Source of the DNA: Hyalangium minutum
GTDB taxonomy: Bacteria; Myxococcota; Myxococcia; Myxococcales; Myxococcaceae
Assembly (NCBI RefSeq): GCF_000737315.1
Contig: NZ_JMCB01000022.1
Coordinates: 62,001-126,000 of the forward strand
DNA: 64,000 bases
Direction: 5' to 3'
The position numbers and the translations under genes were made by a program. Positions 23,530-27,087 of the stretch are shown here, piece by piece. Positions within the stretch are counted from its first letter, which is position 1. Each line of letters starts with the position of its first letter. The notes under the pieces are model-generated. The model saw nothing but the letters and a program-made list of their open reading frames with translations. It was not told where the DNA came from and did no database searches.

Positions 23530-23835
23530 CTACCGGGCGGCGGGCCCGGAAACAGGAGCAGGCTCGAAGATCTCCGAGACGGACTCAGCAATCGCAGCCC
23601 TGCGCACCCAGACCTTGAGCTGTGAGAGTTCCGAACAAGCCATGATGCGCTGGCGCGCAGTCTCATCCACCGTGAGCCCCCGGGCATCGAGCACCTCCAA
23701 GAGGGCTGCCTGCTCGCCTTGATGGAGCCCCTTCTCAAGCCCTTCTTTCAAGCCCTCTTGCAAGCCCTCCTTGCGTCCCTGGGCGACATACCTGCGGGCG
23801 AACTCGCTCTGGTACTCGTACTTTCCTTGTTGCAT
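23530..23835 (-). CDS. Candidate in-frame internal product (RpnS-like antitoxin, 101 aa)
   Basis: GGAGG-cactg-ATG inside the rpn frame (SD 23845-23841, ATG 23835), just before the EG-repeat helix. Confidence 0.6.
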   Translation of the reverse strand: MQQGKYEYQSEFARRYVAQGRKEGLQEGLKEGLEKGLHQGEQAALLEVLDARGLTVDETARQRIMACSELSQLKVWVRRAAIAESVSEIFEPAPVSGPAAR

Positions 23836-24462
23836 CAGTGCCTCCAGGGCGTTTCGAACCGCCTCGCTGAGCGAGGACACGATCAAGTCAACGTAGAGGG
23901 TGCTGCGCTCTTCATCAAGGCCCCGCACCACTTCAATCACGGTCTGGGCAATCGACACTCCCACCTCCTCATGCCCATGTGCCATGGCGGACAACACTGC
24001 TAGCTCCGGATCCTTCTGAGCGGCCTGTTTGTCTTGAATGACCGGGATGGCGTTGGGCCCTATGACGAGGGGCCGGAGCACGAAATCCGGATGGCCCATC
24101 TCGATGGGCTCTGCGCACCAACGAGCCACGGAAGCATCTGGAGCGACGACGAAGAGCGCCGCGGGACATTTCTCACGCGAGCGCACGCTGGCGAGATACA
24201 GCGGCCACGTCTTCCGCTTGCCCTCGTCACGTGACAACTGCACCTCCACCACGATGGCGAAGATGGGCTTGTCGTCCAGCAGGAGTACCACCAAGTCTGC
24301 TCGATACGCAGTGGGTACGACCTCGGTGAGCTCCGCAGACTGCACCCGCGCCTGAGTCCAGACCGGAAGGTGGAGACCGAGCGCATCACGCAGCAACTCA
24401 GGCGCCAGTTCTGGGCGATTGCGGAACAGGAGCAGGAGACCTTCGTGCTGCATCGAAACCAT
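23530..24462 (-). CDS. Rpn (recombination-promoting nuclease / RpnC-YadD-like) PD-(D/E)xK protein
   Basis: RADLVVLL..IVVEVQLSRD nuclease core; C-terminal GRKEGLQEGLKEGLEKG repeats. Confidence 0.85.
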   Translation of the reverse strand: MVSMQHEGLLLLFRNRPELAPELLRDALGLHLPVWTQARVQSAELTEVVPTAYRADLVVLLLDDKPIFAIVVEVQLSRDEGKRKTWPLYLASVRSREKCPAALFVVAPDASVARWCAEPIEMGHPDFVLRPLVIGPNAIPVIQDKQAAQKDPELAVLSAMAHGHEEVGVSIAQTVIEVVRGLDEERSTLYVDLIVSSLSEAVRNALEALMQQGKYEYQSEFARRYVAQGRKEGLQEGLKEGLEKGLHQGEQAALLEVLDARGLTVDETARQRIMACSELSQLKVWVRRAAIAESVSEIFEPAPVSGPAAR

Positions 24463-25340
24463 GGCGCAGCAAGCTACCTGCTGGGTCTGACAGATCCTGA
24501 CCTACTAGGTTCTGCGACTCACGCTCTACTCACGAGACCATAACCTTGGAGCAAGCACGGTGAGCCCCAACATCGTTGCAAGTAGAGCCCCCCACAGTCC
24601 CACGGTAGCGATGGCCCTCTGGCGTCGGTTCGTCTGAAGGCAAGGGCCCACCCCCTGCCTGTTACCAGCGCTCAGCAATAGGGAGTAAGTGCCAACGACC
24701 GAGCAGTGGTCCGATGCCGCCCAGGCCACAGATGTCATCTGTGGGGCCTAAGCCCTTACCCGTCAGCCCGCCTCCGGTAACAGACGACTCCCCATGCGGT
24801 CTGACGGGCTGACTAGACTTCCTGCCCTCTATGGTGGGTGGGACCCCGATCACTCAGAGCGAATAGGGCCAATTGTCGTTTTCCAATAAATACGGTCACT
24901 TAGCCTTTAAATAAAATGGCTGGCAGCCACTTTTCCTACTTGCAGTATGGGGGAGCAGGCGGTAGATCCCCCAACTGTCCGCAGCACCTGCGGCCGAGTT
25001 CTTTGACAACTACATCCGCATAGCTCAACCAAGCGAGTCAGTGGTCCGTTGTACCCAGTCCGGACTCAAAGTCCGGGCACTGATCGCGGTCCCGAGAGTA
25101 ACGGGATCGTTGTGGGCGAGAAGTCAGCGCCCACATACCTCGAAGCATGCGCATCCTGGTCCTGTGGTCTGGCAAGGTGTGCACTGCGACGGAGCAAGGG
25201 CAGCAATGCTCCGTCGGGGCAGCAGGCAAGGCAGAGTGGTTCCAGTTTCCCCTCACATCGAGACAAGCGCGGCTGGGCAGCACGTGCGAGTTAGGTGGCA
25301 AATTCAAACCCGCCACCCTCGACGTGTGAGGAGAAGCAAA

Positions 25341-25541
25341 ATGCGGAAAAACAAGTTGAAGAAGAAACTCGCCTCCATCCACAACTTCCTGCGAGCGGAG
25401 GTGGAGGCAGGGGAACTGGAATTGGGCTTCATGCAGGAGGTCGAGCGAAGCTTGGTCGAGTTGAGCCTCGCGGTTGAGGCCGACGACTATCAGATGGTGA
25501 AAGTCGCCATCAATGAGGCCGCCAAGAAGTTTCGGCGGTGA
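25341..25541 (+). CDS. Retron-associated small protein (SP, 66 aa), putative toxic effector
   Basis: GAGGAG RBS (25328-25333), ATG 25341; MRKNKLKKKLASIHNFLRAEVEAGELELGFMQEVERSLVELSLAVEADDYQMVKVAINEAAKKFRR; position matches type VI retron SP. Confidence 0.75.
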   Translation: MRKNKLKKKLASIHNFLRAEVEAGELELGFMQEVERSLVELSLAVEADDYQMVKVAINEAAKKFRR

Positions 25542-25578
25542 TCCGGCGAAGCGGAAGTAATGACCGAGAGCCCTAACA

Positions 25579-25640
25579 CACTGTCGTTTGTCTTGATGGG
25601 CCAACCGTGAACGTTGGCCCATCAAGACAGACTGATAGTG
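25579..25640 (+). other. Long hairpin, candidate msd (RT-DNA template)
   Basis: Perfect 17-bp IR TGTCTTGATGGGCCAAC (25589-25605) / GTTGGCCCATCAAGACA (25613-25629), extendable to ~27 bp with two G-U pairs and one bulge. Confidence 0.7.
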
Positions 25641-25648
25641 GGCACACG

Positions 25649-25942
25649 ATGAACTATGGCAGGGCATTGAAGAAGCTGCGAGAGAAACGCAATCTCAAGC
25701 AGAAAGAACTGGCTGAAAAGGCTGCCTTAGACGCTAGTTACGTCTCTCAGATTGAGAATGGGAAACGCGTGCCAAGCACTGCCGCTGTTGAGGCCATTGC
25801 CAAAGCACTCGATGTTCCACTCTATCTACTCATGCTGTTCGCATCTGACGCGGAAGATCTGCGAGGCATTTCGGAAGAGCAGGCTCGCCGCCTCGAAAAT
25901 CAGTTCCTAGACCTGGTCATGAAGGCTGAGCAAGGTGATTGA
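25649..25942 (+). CDS. XRE/Cro-CI family HTH protein (retron accessory)
   Basis: ALKKLREKRNLKQKELAEKAALDASYVSQIENGKRVPS; start ATG 25649 preferred over GTG 25607, which lies in the hairpin loop. Confidence 0.9.
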   Translation: MNYGRALKKLREKRNLKQKELAEKAALDASYVSQIENGKRVPSTAAVEAIAKALDVPLYLLMLFASDAEDLRGISEEQARRLENQFLDLVMKAEQGD

Positions 25943-27016
25943 GTGAGCGAGGCAACGGCACGAACCTTTTACTCCAAGGCTGGGCTTGGCTTTCACTTGA
26001 AGCGTGATTGGTCCACCCTGGAGTCATTAGCAGAACATGCTGGGGCCCACTACCGCTCTTTCGATGAATGGATGGGCAACAAGTGGCGGCATTTTGATGT
26101 GCCCAGTAAGCGACTCGCAGATGTTCAGAGGGAGATCGCTCGTTTCCTCAAGGCCAGAGTAAAATTTCCTGACACCATGCTCGGTGGCCTCAAAGGCGGG
26201 TCTCCCAAGAAAAATGCGGAGGCCCATCGTGGGCAGGGACTTGTGTTCAAACTAGACATCCGGGATTGCTTTCCTAGCATCGGCCACCGAAGGGTCTTCC
26301 GGATGTTCCGTGAGCAATTGAAATTCTCTGATCCGATTTCAAATCTGCTCACAAAACTAACAACCTTCCAGAATCGGCTTCCTCAGGGTTCTCCAGCCAG
26401 TTCTGTTATCGCCAATCTCGTCTTGATGGAACTCCACGAGTCCATCCAGTTGGAATGTGAAGCACTAGGACTGAAATGTACTTTTTTTGTTGATGACATC
26501 ACCCTCTCTGGAGAACGCGTTCGAGAGGTCATTGCACCGGTCGTGAGGTTGGTGCAGCGCCATGGCTTCTCGATGCGCCCATGCAAAGTCCGCCTACTAG
26601 CCGCTCACCGAGAAAAGCTTTCTGTCACTGGTGTTTTAGTGAATAGGAGGCGATTGTCAGTTGGACGGACGCGCAAGAACAAGCTCCGAGCGAGAATCCA
26701 TCAACTCTCACGAGGCGAACGCGTAACCGATTCGGATTTACGCTCTATCCAATCCTCGGTTGTACAGGTAAAACACATCTCAAACCACCAAGGTGAGACG
26801 CTAGAGAGGCTTGTGCAGGAAAAGCTACCGAAGCGCGGTGTCCAGACGCCTAAGGAGCGCGCGAAGAAGATTCGGCGAGTTTGCAAATGTACGCACAAGC
26901 ACCGTCATAAGCGGAATGAGGAATCAGTAACTGCTACTCATCAGCCGGCAAGCAGCGTGGCCGCCGGTCTTCCACGCCAACACTTCGTTCATACTCTAGA
27001 AGCTGGCCTCAGATAA
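25943..27016 (+). CDS. Retron-type reverse transcriptase
   Basis: Region X NAEAH (26213), KLDIRDCFPSI, LPQGSPAS, catalytic FVDD (26486), region Y VTG (26624); abuts the HTH stop. Confidence 0.93.
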   Translation: MSEATARTFYSKAGLGFHLKRDWSTLESLAEHAGAHYRSFDEWMGNKWRHFDVPSKRLADVQREIARFLKARVKFPDTMLGGLKGGSPKKNAEAHRGQGLVFKLDIRDCFPSIGHRRVFRMFREQLKFSDPISNLLTKLTTFQNRLPQGSPASSVIANLVLMELHESIQLECEALGLKCTFFVDDITLSGERVREVIAPVVRLVQRHGFSMRPCKVRLLAAHREKLSVTGVLVNRRRLSVGRTRKNKLRARIHQLSRGERVTDSDLRSIQSSVVQVKHISNHQGETLERLVQEKLPKRGVQTPKERAKKIRRVCKCTHKHRHKRNEESVTATHQPASSVAAGLPRQHFVHTLEAGLR

Positions 27017-27033
27017 CGCGCAGCCCTTGAAGA

Positions 27034-27071
27034 GTGAACGCAGCCTGCTCTCGAAAGCAGGCTGCGTTCAC
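27034..27071. terminator. Bidirectional intrinsic terminator closing the retron operon
   Basis: Perfect 16-bp IR GTGAACGCAGCCTGCT / AGCAGGCTGCGTTCAC between convergent genes, followed by CTTTCC. Confidence 0.85.
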
Positions 27072-27087
27072 CTTTCCTCAATGGACC

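Follow-up and report, generated by a model that had tools for sequence, protein, structure and literature searches.

A predicted three-way RNA junction over the ribosome-binding site of the small-protein gene in a type VI retron locus of Hyalangium minutum

Gene content of the retron locus

The window, by which we mean the whole 64,000-nucleotide stretch of DNA analyzed here, lies on contig JMCB01000022.1 (assembly GCA_000737315.1) of the myxobacterium Hyalangium minutum DSM 14724 (PMC5441343). Open reading frames for a small protein (SP), an HTH protein and a reverse transcriptase (RT) follow one another in this order downstream of a predicted RNA junction, and together with their leader they form a cassette of distinctly low GC content. 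The cassette and its genes are:

~24.9-27.08 kb: SP-HTH-RT cassette, 2.2 kb, GC ~0.51-0.59 compared with ~0.69-0.70 in the surrounding DNA
25341..25541, plus strand: SP, open reading frame for a 66-aa small protein, with its ATG at 25341-25343
25649..25942, plus strand: HTH, 97 aa, Cro/C1-type (PADLOC HTH_VI, 1.1e-25; Pfam HTH_3, 5.7e-17)
25943..27016, plus strand: retron reverse transcriptase type VI, 357 aa (PADLOC RT_VI, 1.4e-66; Pfam RVT_1)
27029..27076, no strand: 24-nt inverted repeat at the cassette end, where GC steps from ~0.52 to 0.69

The RT matches the PADLOC RT_VI profile with 222.6 bits over profile positions 7-277 of 279, the second-best PADLOC RT model being RT_II-A (3.9e-46), and its translation shows the retron hallmarks FVDD (the catalytic motif) and VTG, as well as a basic tail with Cys/His residues. 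The HTH_VI match spans 90 of the 92 PADLOC profile positions, and the HTH gene, which ends at 25942, directly abuts the RT start at 25943. The SP-HTH-RT arrangement is that of type VI retrons in the classification of Mestre et al. (2020), and judged from its sequence the locus is one of them. The inverted repeat at 27029..27076 is probably a bidirectional terminator. No tRNA gene was found near the cassette, and a sigma-70 promoter scan of the leader returned no site.

For SP, AlphaFold predicts a three-helix bundle (pLDDT 86). Family searches against Pfam, PADLOC and NCBIfam gave no match for SP, and a search of its predicted fold against the PDB returned nothing at an E-value of 0.001 or better. 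A single-sequence search recovered SP itself only; homologues required a profile built from six SPs, with which just seven metagenomic proteins, none of them with a name, were retrieved. By analogy with the SPs of Retron-Vpa2 and Retron-Sen3, SP is presumed to be a toxic effector.

Related loci

RT homologues were found at 53-63% identity and the SP-profile search added more. Nine loci (the window, L001, L002, L003, L004, L005, L026, L036, and L038) were compared; they share a common gene order and a ~430-nt leader, and the eight relatives of the window are all metagenomic, with unrelated flanking DNA. Every close RT homologue with readable upstream DNA (L001-L005 and L026) is preceded by the SP-HTH-RT arrangement and the leader, and in the six SP homologues the HTH gene always adjoins, as does the RT gene where the contig reaches that far. 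The apparent lack of an RT in L038 was traced to a gene-calling artefact. HTH is the most conserved component, with 70-80% identity. A metagenome scan also yielded more distant type VI loci (L008-L018), with 30-40% RT identity. No relative was found by the RT-alignment scan of GTDB representative genomes, viral contigs gave no match, and plasmid and phage collections contained only RTs of ≤39% identity. Six GTDB loci carrying the motif TCACATCGAGAC-N10-20-GCACGTGCG were rejected as chance occurrences, since none encodes an RT or HTH and approximately three are expected by our estimate.

The three-way junction in the window

The ribosome-binding region of SP was folded with RNAfold in local, 501-nt and 729-nt contexts, and the following elements were located:

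25245..25337, plus strand: three-way junction, riboregulator arm
25328..25333, plus strand: Shine-Dalgarno sequence (SD) GAGGAG of SP, 7 nt upstream of the ATG

A sequence-only reading of this DNA had described a stem between 25247-25262 and 25318-25335 that covers the SD GAGGAG and encloses two sub-hairpins at 25267-25287 and 25294-25317. Reading of the bases and RNAfold agree on this stem. The arms TTCCCCTCACATCGAG (25247-25262) and CTCGACGTGTGAGGAGAA (25318-25335) lie where described, the 3' arm having the layout CTCGA-cg-TGTGAGGAGAA, complementary to TTCCCCTCACATCGAG, and they form 15 Watson-Crick pairs, interrupted by a single C/A mismatch and by two bulged nucleotides, CG; in the fold the outer stem extends slightly further, pairing 25245-25262 with 25318-25337. 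Both sub-hairpins were returned as well, the first with GGGCAGCA (25275-25282) in its loop and the second with the stem 25294-25299/25312-25317. RNAfold of 25247-25343, the check proposed for the junction, gave the described structure as MFE and centroid alike, with an MFE of -39.6 kcal/mol compared with -25.9 ± 3.5 kcal/mol for 200 dinucleotide shuffles (z = -3.88), none of which matched its stability. The junction helices were kept in the 501-nt context (z = -5.8), and in the 729-nt leader-SP RNA (24912-25640) the outer-stem pair probabilities were 0.91-0.98.

In the window the unpaired probability of the SD is ~0, apart from the one A at the C/A mismatch, and the predicted cost of opening the SD is 9.6 kcal/mol; shuffling of the upstream sequence lowers this cost to 2.3 ± 1.7 kcal/mol, and none of 100 shuffles comes up to 9.6 kcal/mol. 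In the folding model, a three-way junction of very high stability thus holds the SD of the window in its outer stem. Two other roles considered for this region were ruled out: sub-hairpin 2 is not followed by the U-tract of a terminator, and the ORF at 25147-25329, a candidate leader peptide, has its frame broken by indels in the relatives.

Architecture of the leader-SP RNA

In the full-length fold of the window, a central node, formed by pairing of the 5' region with the SP start, carries arm 1 (25027-25241) and, as arm 2, the three-way junction (25245-25337); 3' of the two arms follow the SP coding region and then a 27-bp hairpin. The elements outside the junction are:

24917..24929, plus strand: 5' stem-loop or palindrome UGGCU-GGC-AGCCA, found in every relative with a full leader, MFE helix probability 0.62
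24996..25004, plus strand: 5' strand GAGUUCUUU of a long-range helix, pairing with SP codons 7-10 (25361-25370), probability 0.88
25015..25021, plus strand: anti-AUG element UCCGCAU, pairing with AUGCGGA (25341-25347), probability 0.97
25027..25241, plus strand: arm 1, putative msr-msd, with five hairpins and a variable center
25579..25640, plus strand: 27-bp hairpin between SP and HTH, probability 0.99, found in 9/9 loci

Homology between the loci starts at the 5' stem-loop, ~430 nt upstream of SP and with an A-tract on its 5' side, and runs into the RT gene. Because the stem-loop is invariant, a role in RNA cannot be told from a role in DNA (operator or promoter). The helix 24996-25004/25361-25370 closes the entire leader domain, and its pair 24999:25367 covaries: it is C-G in five loci (L001-L005) and U-A in four (the window, L026, L028, and L038), and it switches even between the near-identical L001 and L026. 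In addition, 25007-11 pairs with 25354-58 in the central node of the window fold. The anti-AUG element is the MFE partner of the AUG also in L001, L003, L005, and L026, and its helix has undergone two independent compensatory changes, to UGCAU/AUGCA in L005 and to CUCAU/AUGAG in L038, both of which alter SP codon 2. In the window the unpaired probability of the AUG is ~0, and the SD and AUG are therefore predicted to be doubly sequestered, by separate helices.

The five hairpins of arm 1 lie at 25058-78, 25086-25110, 25111-35, 25145-87, and 25188-25215, and by analogy with Retron-Vpa2 we infer that this arm is the template for reverse transcription. The 3' base of the hairpin at 25579-25640 abuts the HTH ribosome site, and its apical half contains many compensatory changes in addition to G.U pairs. 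No curated Rfam family, retron msr included, was matched; two Rfam mir-9424 matches on this hairpin were dismissed as spurious (32.7 bits, where the gathering score is 90). Three helices between leader and coding sequence (24996-25004/25361-70, 25015-21/25341-47, and 25240-51/25410-21) show compensatory changes across the relatives, which, judged comparatively, means that leader and SP coding sequence must belong to one structured RNA.

Conservation of SD burial

Local folds of six relatives showed a junction-like structure in which a C-rich leader is paired with the SD. SD burial was strong or moderate relative to shuffled sequences in five of the nine loci: no more than 1 of 100 shuffles reached the observed value in the window, L002 and L036, and 3-4 of 100 did so in L003 and L004. 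In the remaining four (L001, L026, L005, and L038), burial was no better than in shuffles, and the full-length folds of L001, L003, and L026 left the SD free with the AUG still paired. Across the relatives the SD, the AUG or both are paired, with varying strength. In the distant L008 (37% RT identity) the SD is buried with other bases, CCUCCAU pairing with AUGGAGG, and a covariance model of the family matches this locus at the expected position (17.5 bits, E ~0.02).

When 11 relatives were aligned, sub-hairpin 2 was 100% paired, with two compensatory pairs, and the inner part of the outer stem was 96% paired and nearly invariant; the distal, SD-covering stem was only 74% paired because its register shifts between relatives. 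Covariation of the stem is weak, with four pairs changing on both sides, a number equaled by 43 of 500 shuffles. RNAalifold gave an unstable consensus for six full-length RNAs, and averaged pair probabilities and hand-checked helices were used instead. An alignment with strong apparent covariation (A6) was set aside, as one of its rows (L002:429-523, E = 0.63) is probably spurious and that of L008 is weak.

Competing helices

Strands of the junction can also enter two alternative helices, B and C, built from the following elements:

25281..25290, plus strand: helix B strand CACGUGCGAG, alternative partner of CUCGACGUG (25318-25326)
25240..25251, plus strand: leader element UUCCAGUUUCCC, the 3' half of which is the anti-SD and the whole of which can form helix C
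25410..25421, plus strand: helix C partner GGGGAACUGGAA, inside SP at codons 24-27 (G-E-L-E)

Helix B is mutually exclusive with sub-hairpin 1 and with the inner outer stem. It is paired in 98.8% of cells of alignment A4 and is adopted in the full-length MFE structures of L001, L003, and L026; when it is forced in the window, the SD opens in part, at a cost of +7.1 kcal/mol. Helix C has a duplex energy of -17 to -25 kcal/mol and a pair probability of 0.56-1.0 in six of eight relatives, compared with 0.003 in the window, and one of its pairs covaries, the window having U-A, L001 A-U and L026 G.U. When helix C is forced in the window, at a cost of +5.0 kcal/mol, the SD core remains paired. The junction is best regarded as one among several states of the element; it dominates in the window and is expected to be the state first formed during transcription.

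Read as a three-state element, the C-rich leader (25240-25257) would alternate between the SD and the synonymous-site-constrained GGGGAACUGGAA (25410-21), and the strand CUCGxCGUG between CACAUCGAG and CACGUGCGAG.

The direct repeat GGGCRGCA

The motif in the loop of sub-hairpin 1 has a second copy upstream of the junction:

25217..25224, plus strand: direct repeat GGGCAGCA, upstream copy, 58 nt before the loop copy at 25275-25282

Only the window has a third copy of GGGCAGCA, which occupies 25198-25205 within the loop of hairpin 25188-25215. Each of the nine loci has GGGCRGCA at the loop position and at the upstream position, with a spacing of 57-59 nt, and the base R agrees between these two copies every time (A/A in five, G/G in four), which on an NJ tree of SP and HTH DNA corresponds to at least two independent joint changes of both copies. 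In L008, a different 8-mer, CAAGGACA, occupies the two homologous positions (-62 and -129 from the ATG), and in L009, CUGAUGGC(G) is found beside the anti-SD and at two upstream sites. No complement of the repeat motif was found in cis. A lone 8-nt repeat is not significant, as 35-47% of shuffles reach such a length between these zones; the signal lies in the positional conservation and in the joint change of the copies. As the comparison of the loci shows, the loop motif has co-evolved with its upstream copy.

Discussion

Two type VI retrons characterized in recent preprints provide the closest comparisons. In Retron-Vpa2 of Vibrio parahaemolyticus, the SP toxin is translationally repressed within a 'hybrid RNA' (hyRNA) and derepressed by msDNA, RT and HTH co-purify with the hyRNA, removal of the non-coding hyRNA unleashes toxicity, loss of HTH is toxic only with an active RT, and docking of msDNA on a repeat in the regulator loop has been proposed (Zhang et al. 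2025, bioRxiv 10.1101/2025.10.22.683967). The locus described here resembles Retron-Vpa2 in its SP-HTH-RT operon with a structured leader that continues directly into the SP coding sequence, in the placement within stems of the ribosome-binding site (RBS) as well as the start codon, in the inverted repeats tying the arms to a central node, and in the short direct repeat with copies in the regulator loop and upstream (in the msr-msd arm, which is putative here). It differs in having an SP of 66 aa with three helices (55 aa in Vpa2), an RBS placed in a three-way junction's outer stem (in Vpa2, 'two stem-loops'), a lineage-variable 8-nt repeat GGGCRGCA with a third copy in the window, a 27-bp hairpin after SP, and a myxobacterial host. 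The likeness is drawn from gene order and predicted RNA features.

In Retron-Sen3, a member of the beta- and gammaproteobacterial cl2075 lineage, the RBS of SP is likewise predicted to be sequestered, whereas SP is produced constitutively and neutralized by HTH; ssDNA is also made constitutively, defense requires an '18-nt stem-loop', and an 'extended transcript' joins the ncRNA and SP (Garcia-Rodriguez et al. 2026, bioRxiv 10.64898/2026.04.27.721009). Here too the likeness is considerable, comprising the gene order, a short conserved stem-loop on the ncRNA's 5' edge (24917-24929 in the window), an SP RBS for which a basal stem and also an alternative conformation are predicted, and an SP coding region within covarying RNA structure, whereas the SP of Sen3 has 79 aa compared with 66 aa here and the host here is a myxobacterium. 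Translational derepression of a type VI retron, which the sequence-only reading had invoked, corresponds to the report on Vpa2; the reading's further statement that this would operate rather than sequestration of the toxin in a complex was unjustified, as Sen3 combines predicted RBS burial with an HTH-neutralized SP. More generally, the element resembles toehold or anti-SD riboregulators and translational riboswitches, in which an upstream anti-SD sequesters the SD, mutually exclusive helices (here A, B, and C) share strands, and a seed displayed in a loop is open to a trans-acting nucleic acid. In contrast to these, the trans-activator proposed here is reverse-transcribed DNA with that RNA molecule itself as template, the seed has a length of only 8 nt, and there is no ligand or sRNA.

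Based on these comparisons, translational gating of SP is plausible here, and we lean, with limited confidence, toward reading the junction as the ribosome-site arm of a type VI retron 'hybrid RNA' that gates SP in the manner of Vpa2. By analogy with Vpa2, SP translation would be low in the uninfected cell through the double sequestration of SD and AUG; phage recombination functions would lead to accumulation of reverse-transcribed DNA, and this cDNA, carrying the complement of the repeat, would dock on the loop of sub-hairpin 1. Docking might then shift the arm to helix B (25281-90/25318-26) and helix C (25240-51/25410-21), by which the SD and AUG would be released and the toxin SP made. HTH would probably restrain reverse transcription and may also bind SP, as in Sen3. 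This more detailed version, in which the arm is a three-state strand-exchange switch and docking of cDNA on the GGGCRGCA loop selects the ON state, is tentative and rather doubtful. The SD stays buried when the loop repeat is forced unpaired in silico, and eight base pairs are thermodynamically too few to open a junction of -40 kcal/mol; if right, the docking model must therefore include a contribution from proteins or kinetics.

The most serious competitor of translational gating is control as reported for Sen3, with SP constitutively translated and neutralized post-translationally by HTH, and with a trigger (e.g., RecBCD inhibition) acting on the complex; the junction would then be an RT/HTH-binding scaffold or would merely tune the output of SP. 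Retron-Sen3 has the same gene order, an RBS predicted in a basal stem, a conserved 5' stem-loop and a coding region under RNA-structural selection, and nonetheless shows basal SP and HTH-dependent viability. The weak SD burial in four of the nine loci and the position of HTH as the most conserved component (70-80% identity) point in the same direction, whereas the near-zero unpaired probability of both SD and AUG in the window does not, and the co-evolving direct repeat is a prediction of the Vpa2 docking model. The SP family here, moreover, appears to be set apart from cl2075 by its lineage and by the profile search (7 proteins), and we consider Sen3-like control at this locus rather unlikely. 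The two models are not exclusive, and a translational layer and an HTH-protein layer may act together.

A role of the junction mainly in recognition by RT or HTH, or in RNA stability, with SD pairing as a by-product of a C-rich motif, appears less probable still. Such a role would fit the 5' arm CCUCACAUCGAGAC and sub-hairpin 1, which are almost invariant in a way more typical of protein or tertiary contacts, and the co-purification of the Vpa2 RT and HTH with the hyRNA; deletion of the non-coding hyRNA in that system, however, frees toxicity. In the relatives, furthermore, the register of the anti-SD moves while SD pairing is kept, and an independent helix hiding the AUG shows compensatory changes that alter codon 2, neither of which argues for a by-product. 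That the junction reflects no more than functionless chance complementarity in a GC-rich leader is very improbable: C-rich and G-rich tracts do pair readily and the SD-covering stem shows little covariation, yet no shuffle was equally stable (z = -3.9 and -5.8), the covariance model detects L008, whose RT identity is 37%, where a match is expected, and conservation of the element among metagenomic relatives with unrelated flanks effectively refutes this explanation.

In type VI retrons the toxin is turned on by the DNA product, the reverse of what is usual for retrons. How they are controlled is disputed between the two preprints of 2025-2026, one arguing for translational (Vpa2) and the other for post-translational control (Sen3). 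Control of the kind favored here was already reported in 2025 for a related retron, and what is new is a further example and not a new kind of system. The locus appears to represent a third, distant lineage, with a myxobacterial host and an otherwise orphan SP family, and it offers a clear in silico double lock on SD and AUG together with a co-evolving repeat, and therefore the msDNA-docking hypothesis is directly testable here. If that hypothesis is true, the joint evolution of the repeat copies (A/A, G/G, CAAGGACA) would be the first comparative evidence that pairing between retron DNA and mRNA activates a toxin.

Borders and surroundings of the retron cassette

The type VI retron lies in a cassette of ~2.2 kb (within 24800-27080) with a GC content of ~0.51-0.59, compared with ~0.69-0.70 in the surrounding DNA. 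Neither an integrase gene nor a tRNA was found adjacent to it, and its flanks hold the following features:

23530-24462, minus strand: gene upstream of the retron, with only a faint match to Rpn-family nucleases/transposases
27029-27076: 24-nt inverted repeat at the end of the cassette

The retron's genomic context is not the same in its metagenomic relatives of the same gene order. The neighbouring genes in three of them (L002, L004 and L005) are:

L002 390-1193: Bro-N/P63C gene of phage type, immediately upstream of the retron
L004 2882-3508 and L005 3960-4718: glutathione S-transferase gene, convergent with the RT gene and overlapping its 3' end in both loci

Two public gene calls among the relatives are wrong. 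In L005 (2189-2545) the SP open reading frame was lengthened by 54 codons across the structured leader, and in L038 (1284-1685) a minus-strand open reading frame was placed over the RT, which is present according to tblastn. The more distant loci L011-L018 from the metagenome scan are AT-rich type VI loci (RT identity 30-34%) with a different SP of 103 aa, which has a conserved hydrophobic C-terminus (…FNIPLSCIQYLRIQILYI) and whose gene ends 4 nt within the HTH gene. No direct repeat comparable to that of the window stood out in their leaders, except for an 11-mer in L018.

Elements of the RT, leader and SP-HTH region

The elements considered within the retron are:

24917-24929: palindrome UGGCU-GGC-AGCCA, after an A-tract
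within 25371-25408: anti-SD-like CCUCC tract, SP codons 11-12
25579-25640: near-perfect 27-bp hairpin between the SP and HTH genes
26870-26920: basic C-terminal tail of the RT, KKIRRVCKCTHKHRHKRNEE (residues about 310-325)

One Cys and one His in the RT tail are invariant among eight homologues. The tail is possibly an extension that binds nucleic acid or a metal.

Homology between the loci starts exactly at the palindrome, which resembles the short 5' stem-loop of the type VI Retron-Sen3 that is essential for defence (bioRxiv 10.64898/2026.04.27.721009). Because it never varies among the loci, it could equally be a DNA element, either an HTH operator or part of a promoter, as an RNA stem-loop; a consensus scan of the leader found no sigma-70 promoter. 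The hairpin between SP and HTH, kept in all nine loci, contains G.U pairs and shows many compensatory changes in its apical half, and no stem in the retron locus is longer. It could form the 3' end of a hybrid RNA (hyRNA, as in Retron-Vpa2) or stabilise it. Alternatively, it could control translation of HTH, whose weak ribosome site adjoins the hairpin base, or could even be the true msd.

Full-length folds pair the SP-internal CCUCC tract with the SD in some relatives (L002 and L004); in the window its hairpin partner is GGAGGUGGAGG. At 25410-21, within SP, the synonymous sites around GGGGAACUGGAA are frozen, a pattern that suggests selection at the RNA level within the SP gene.
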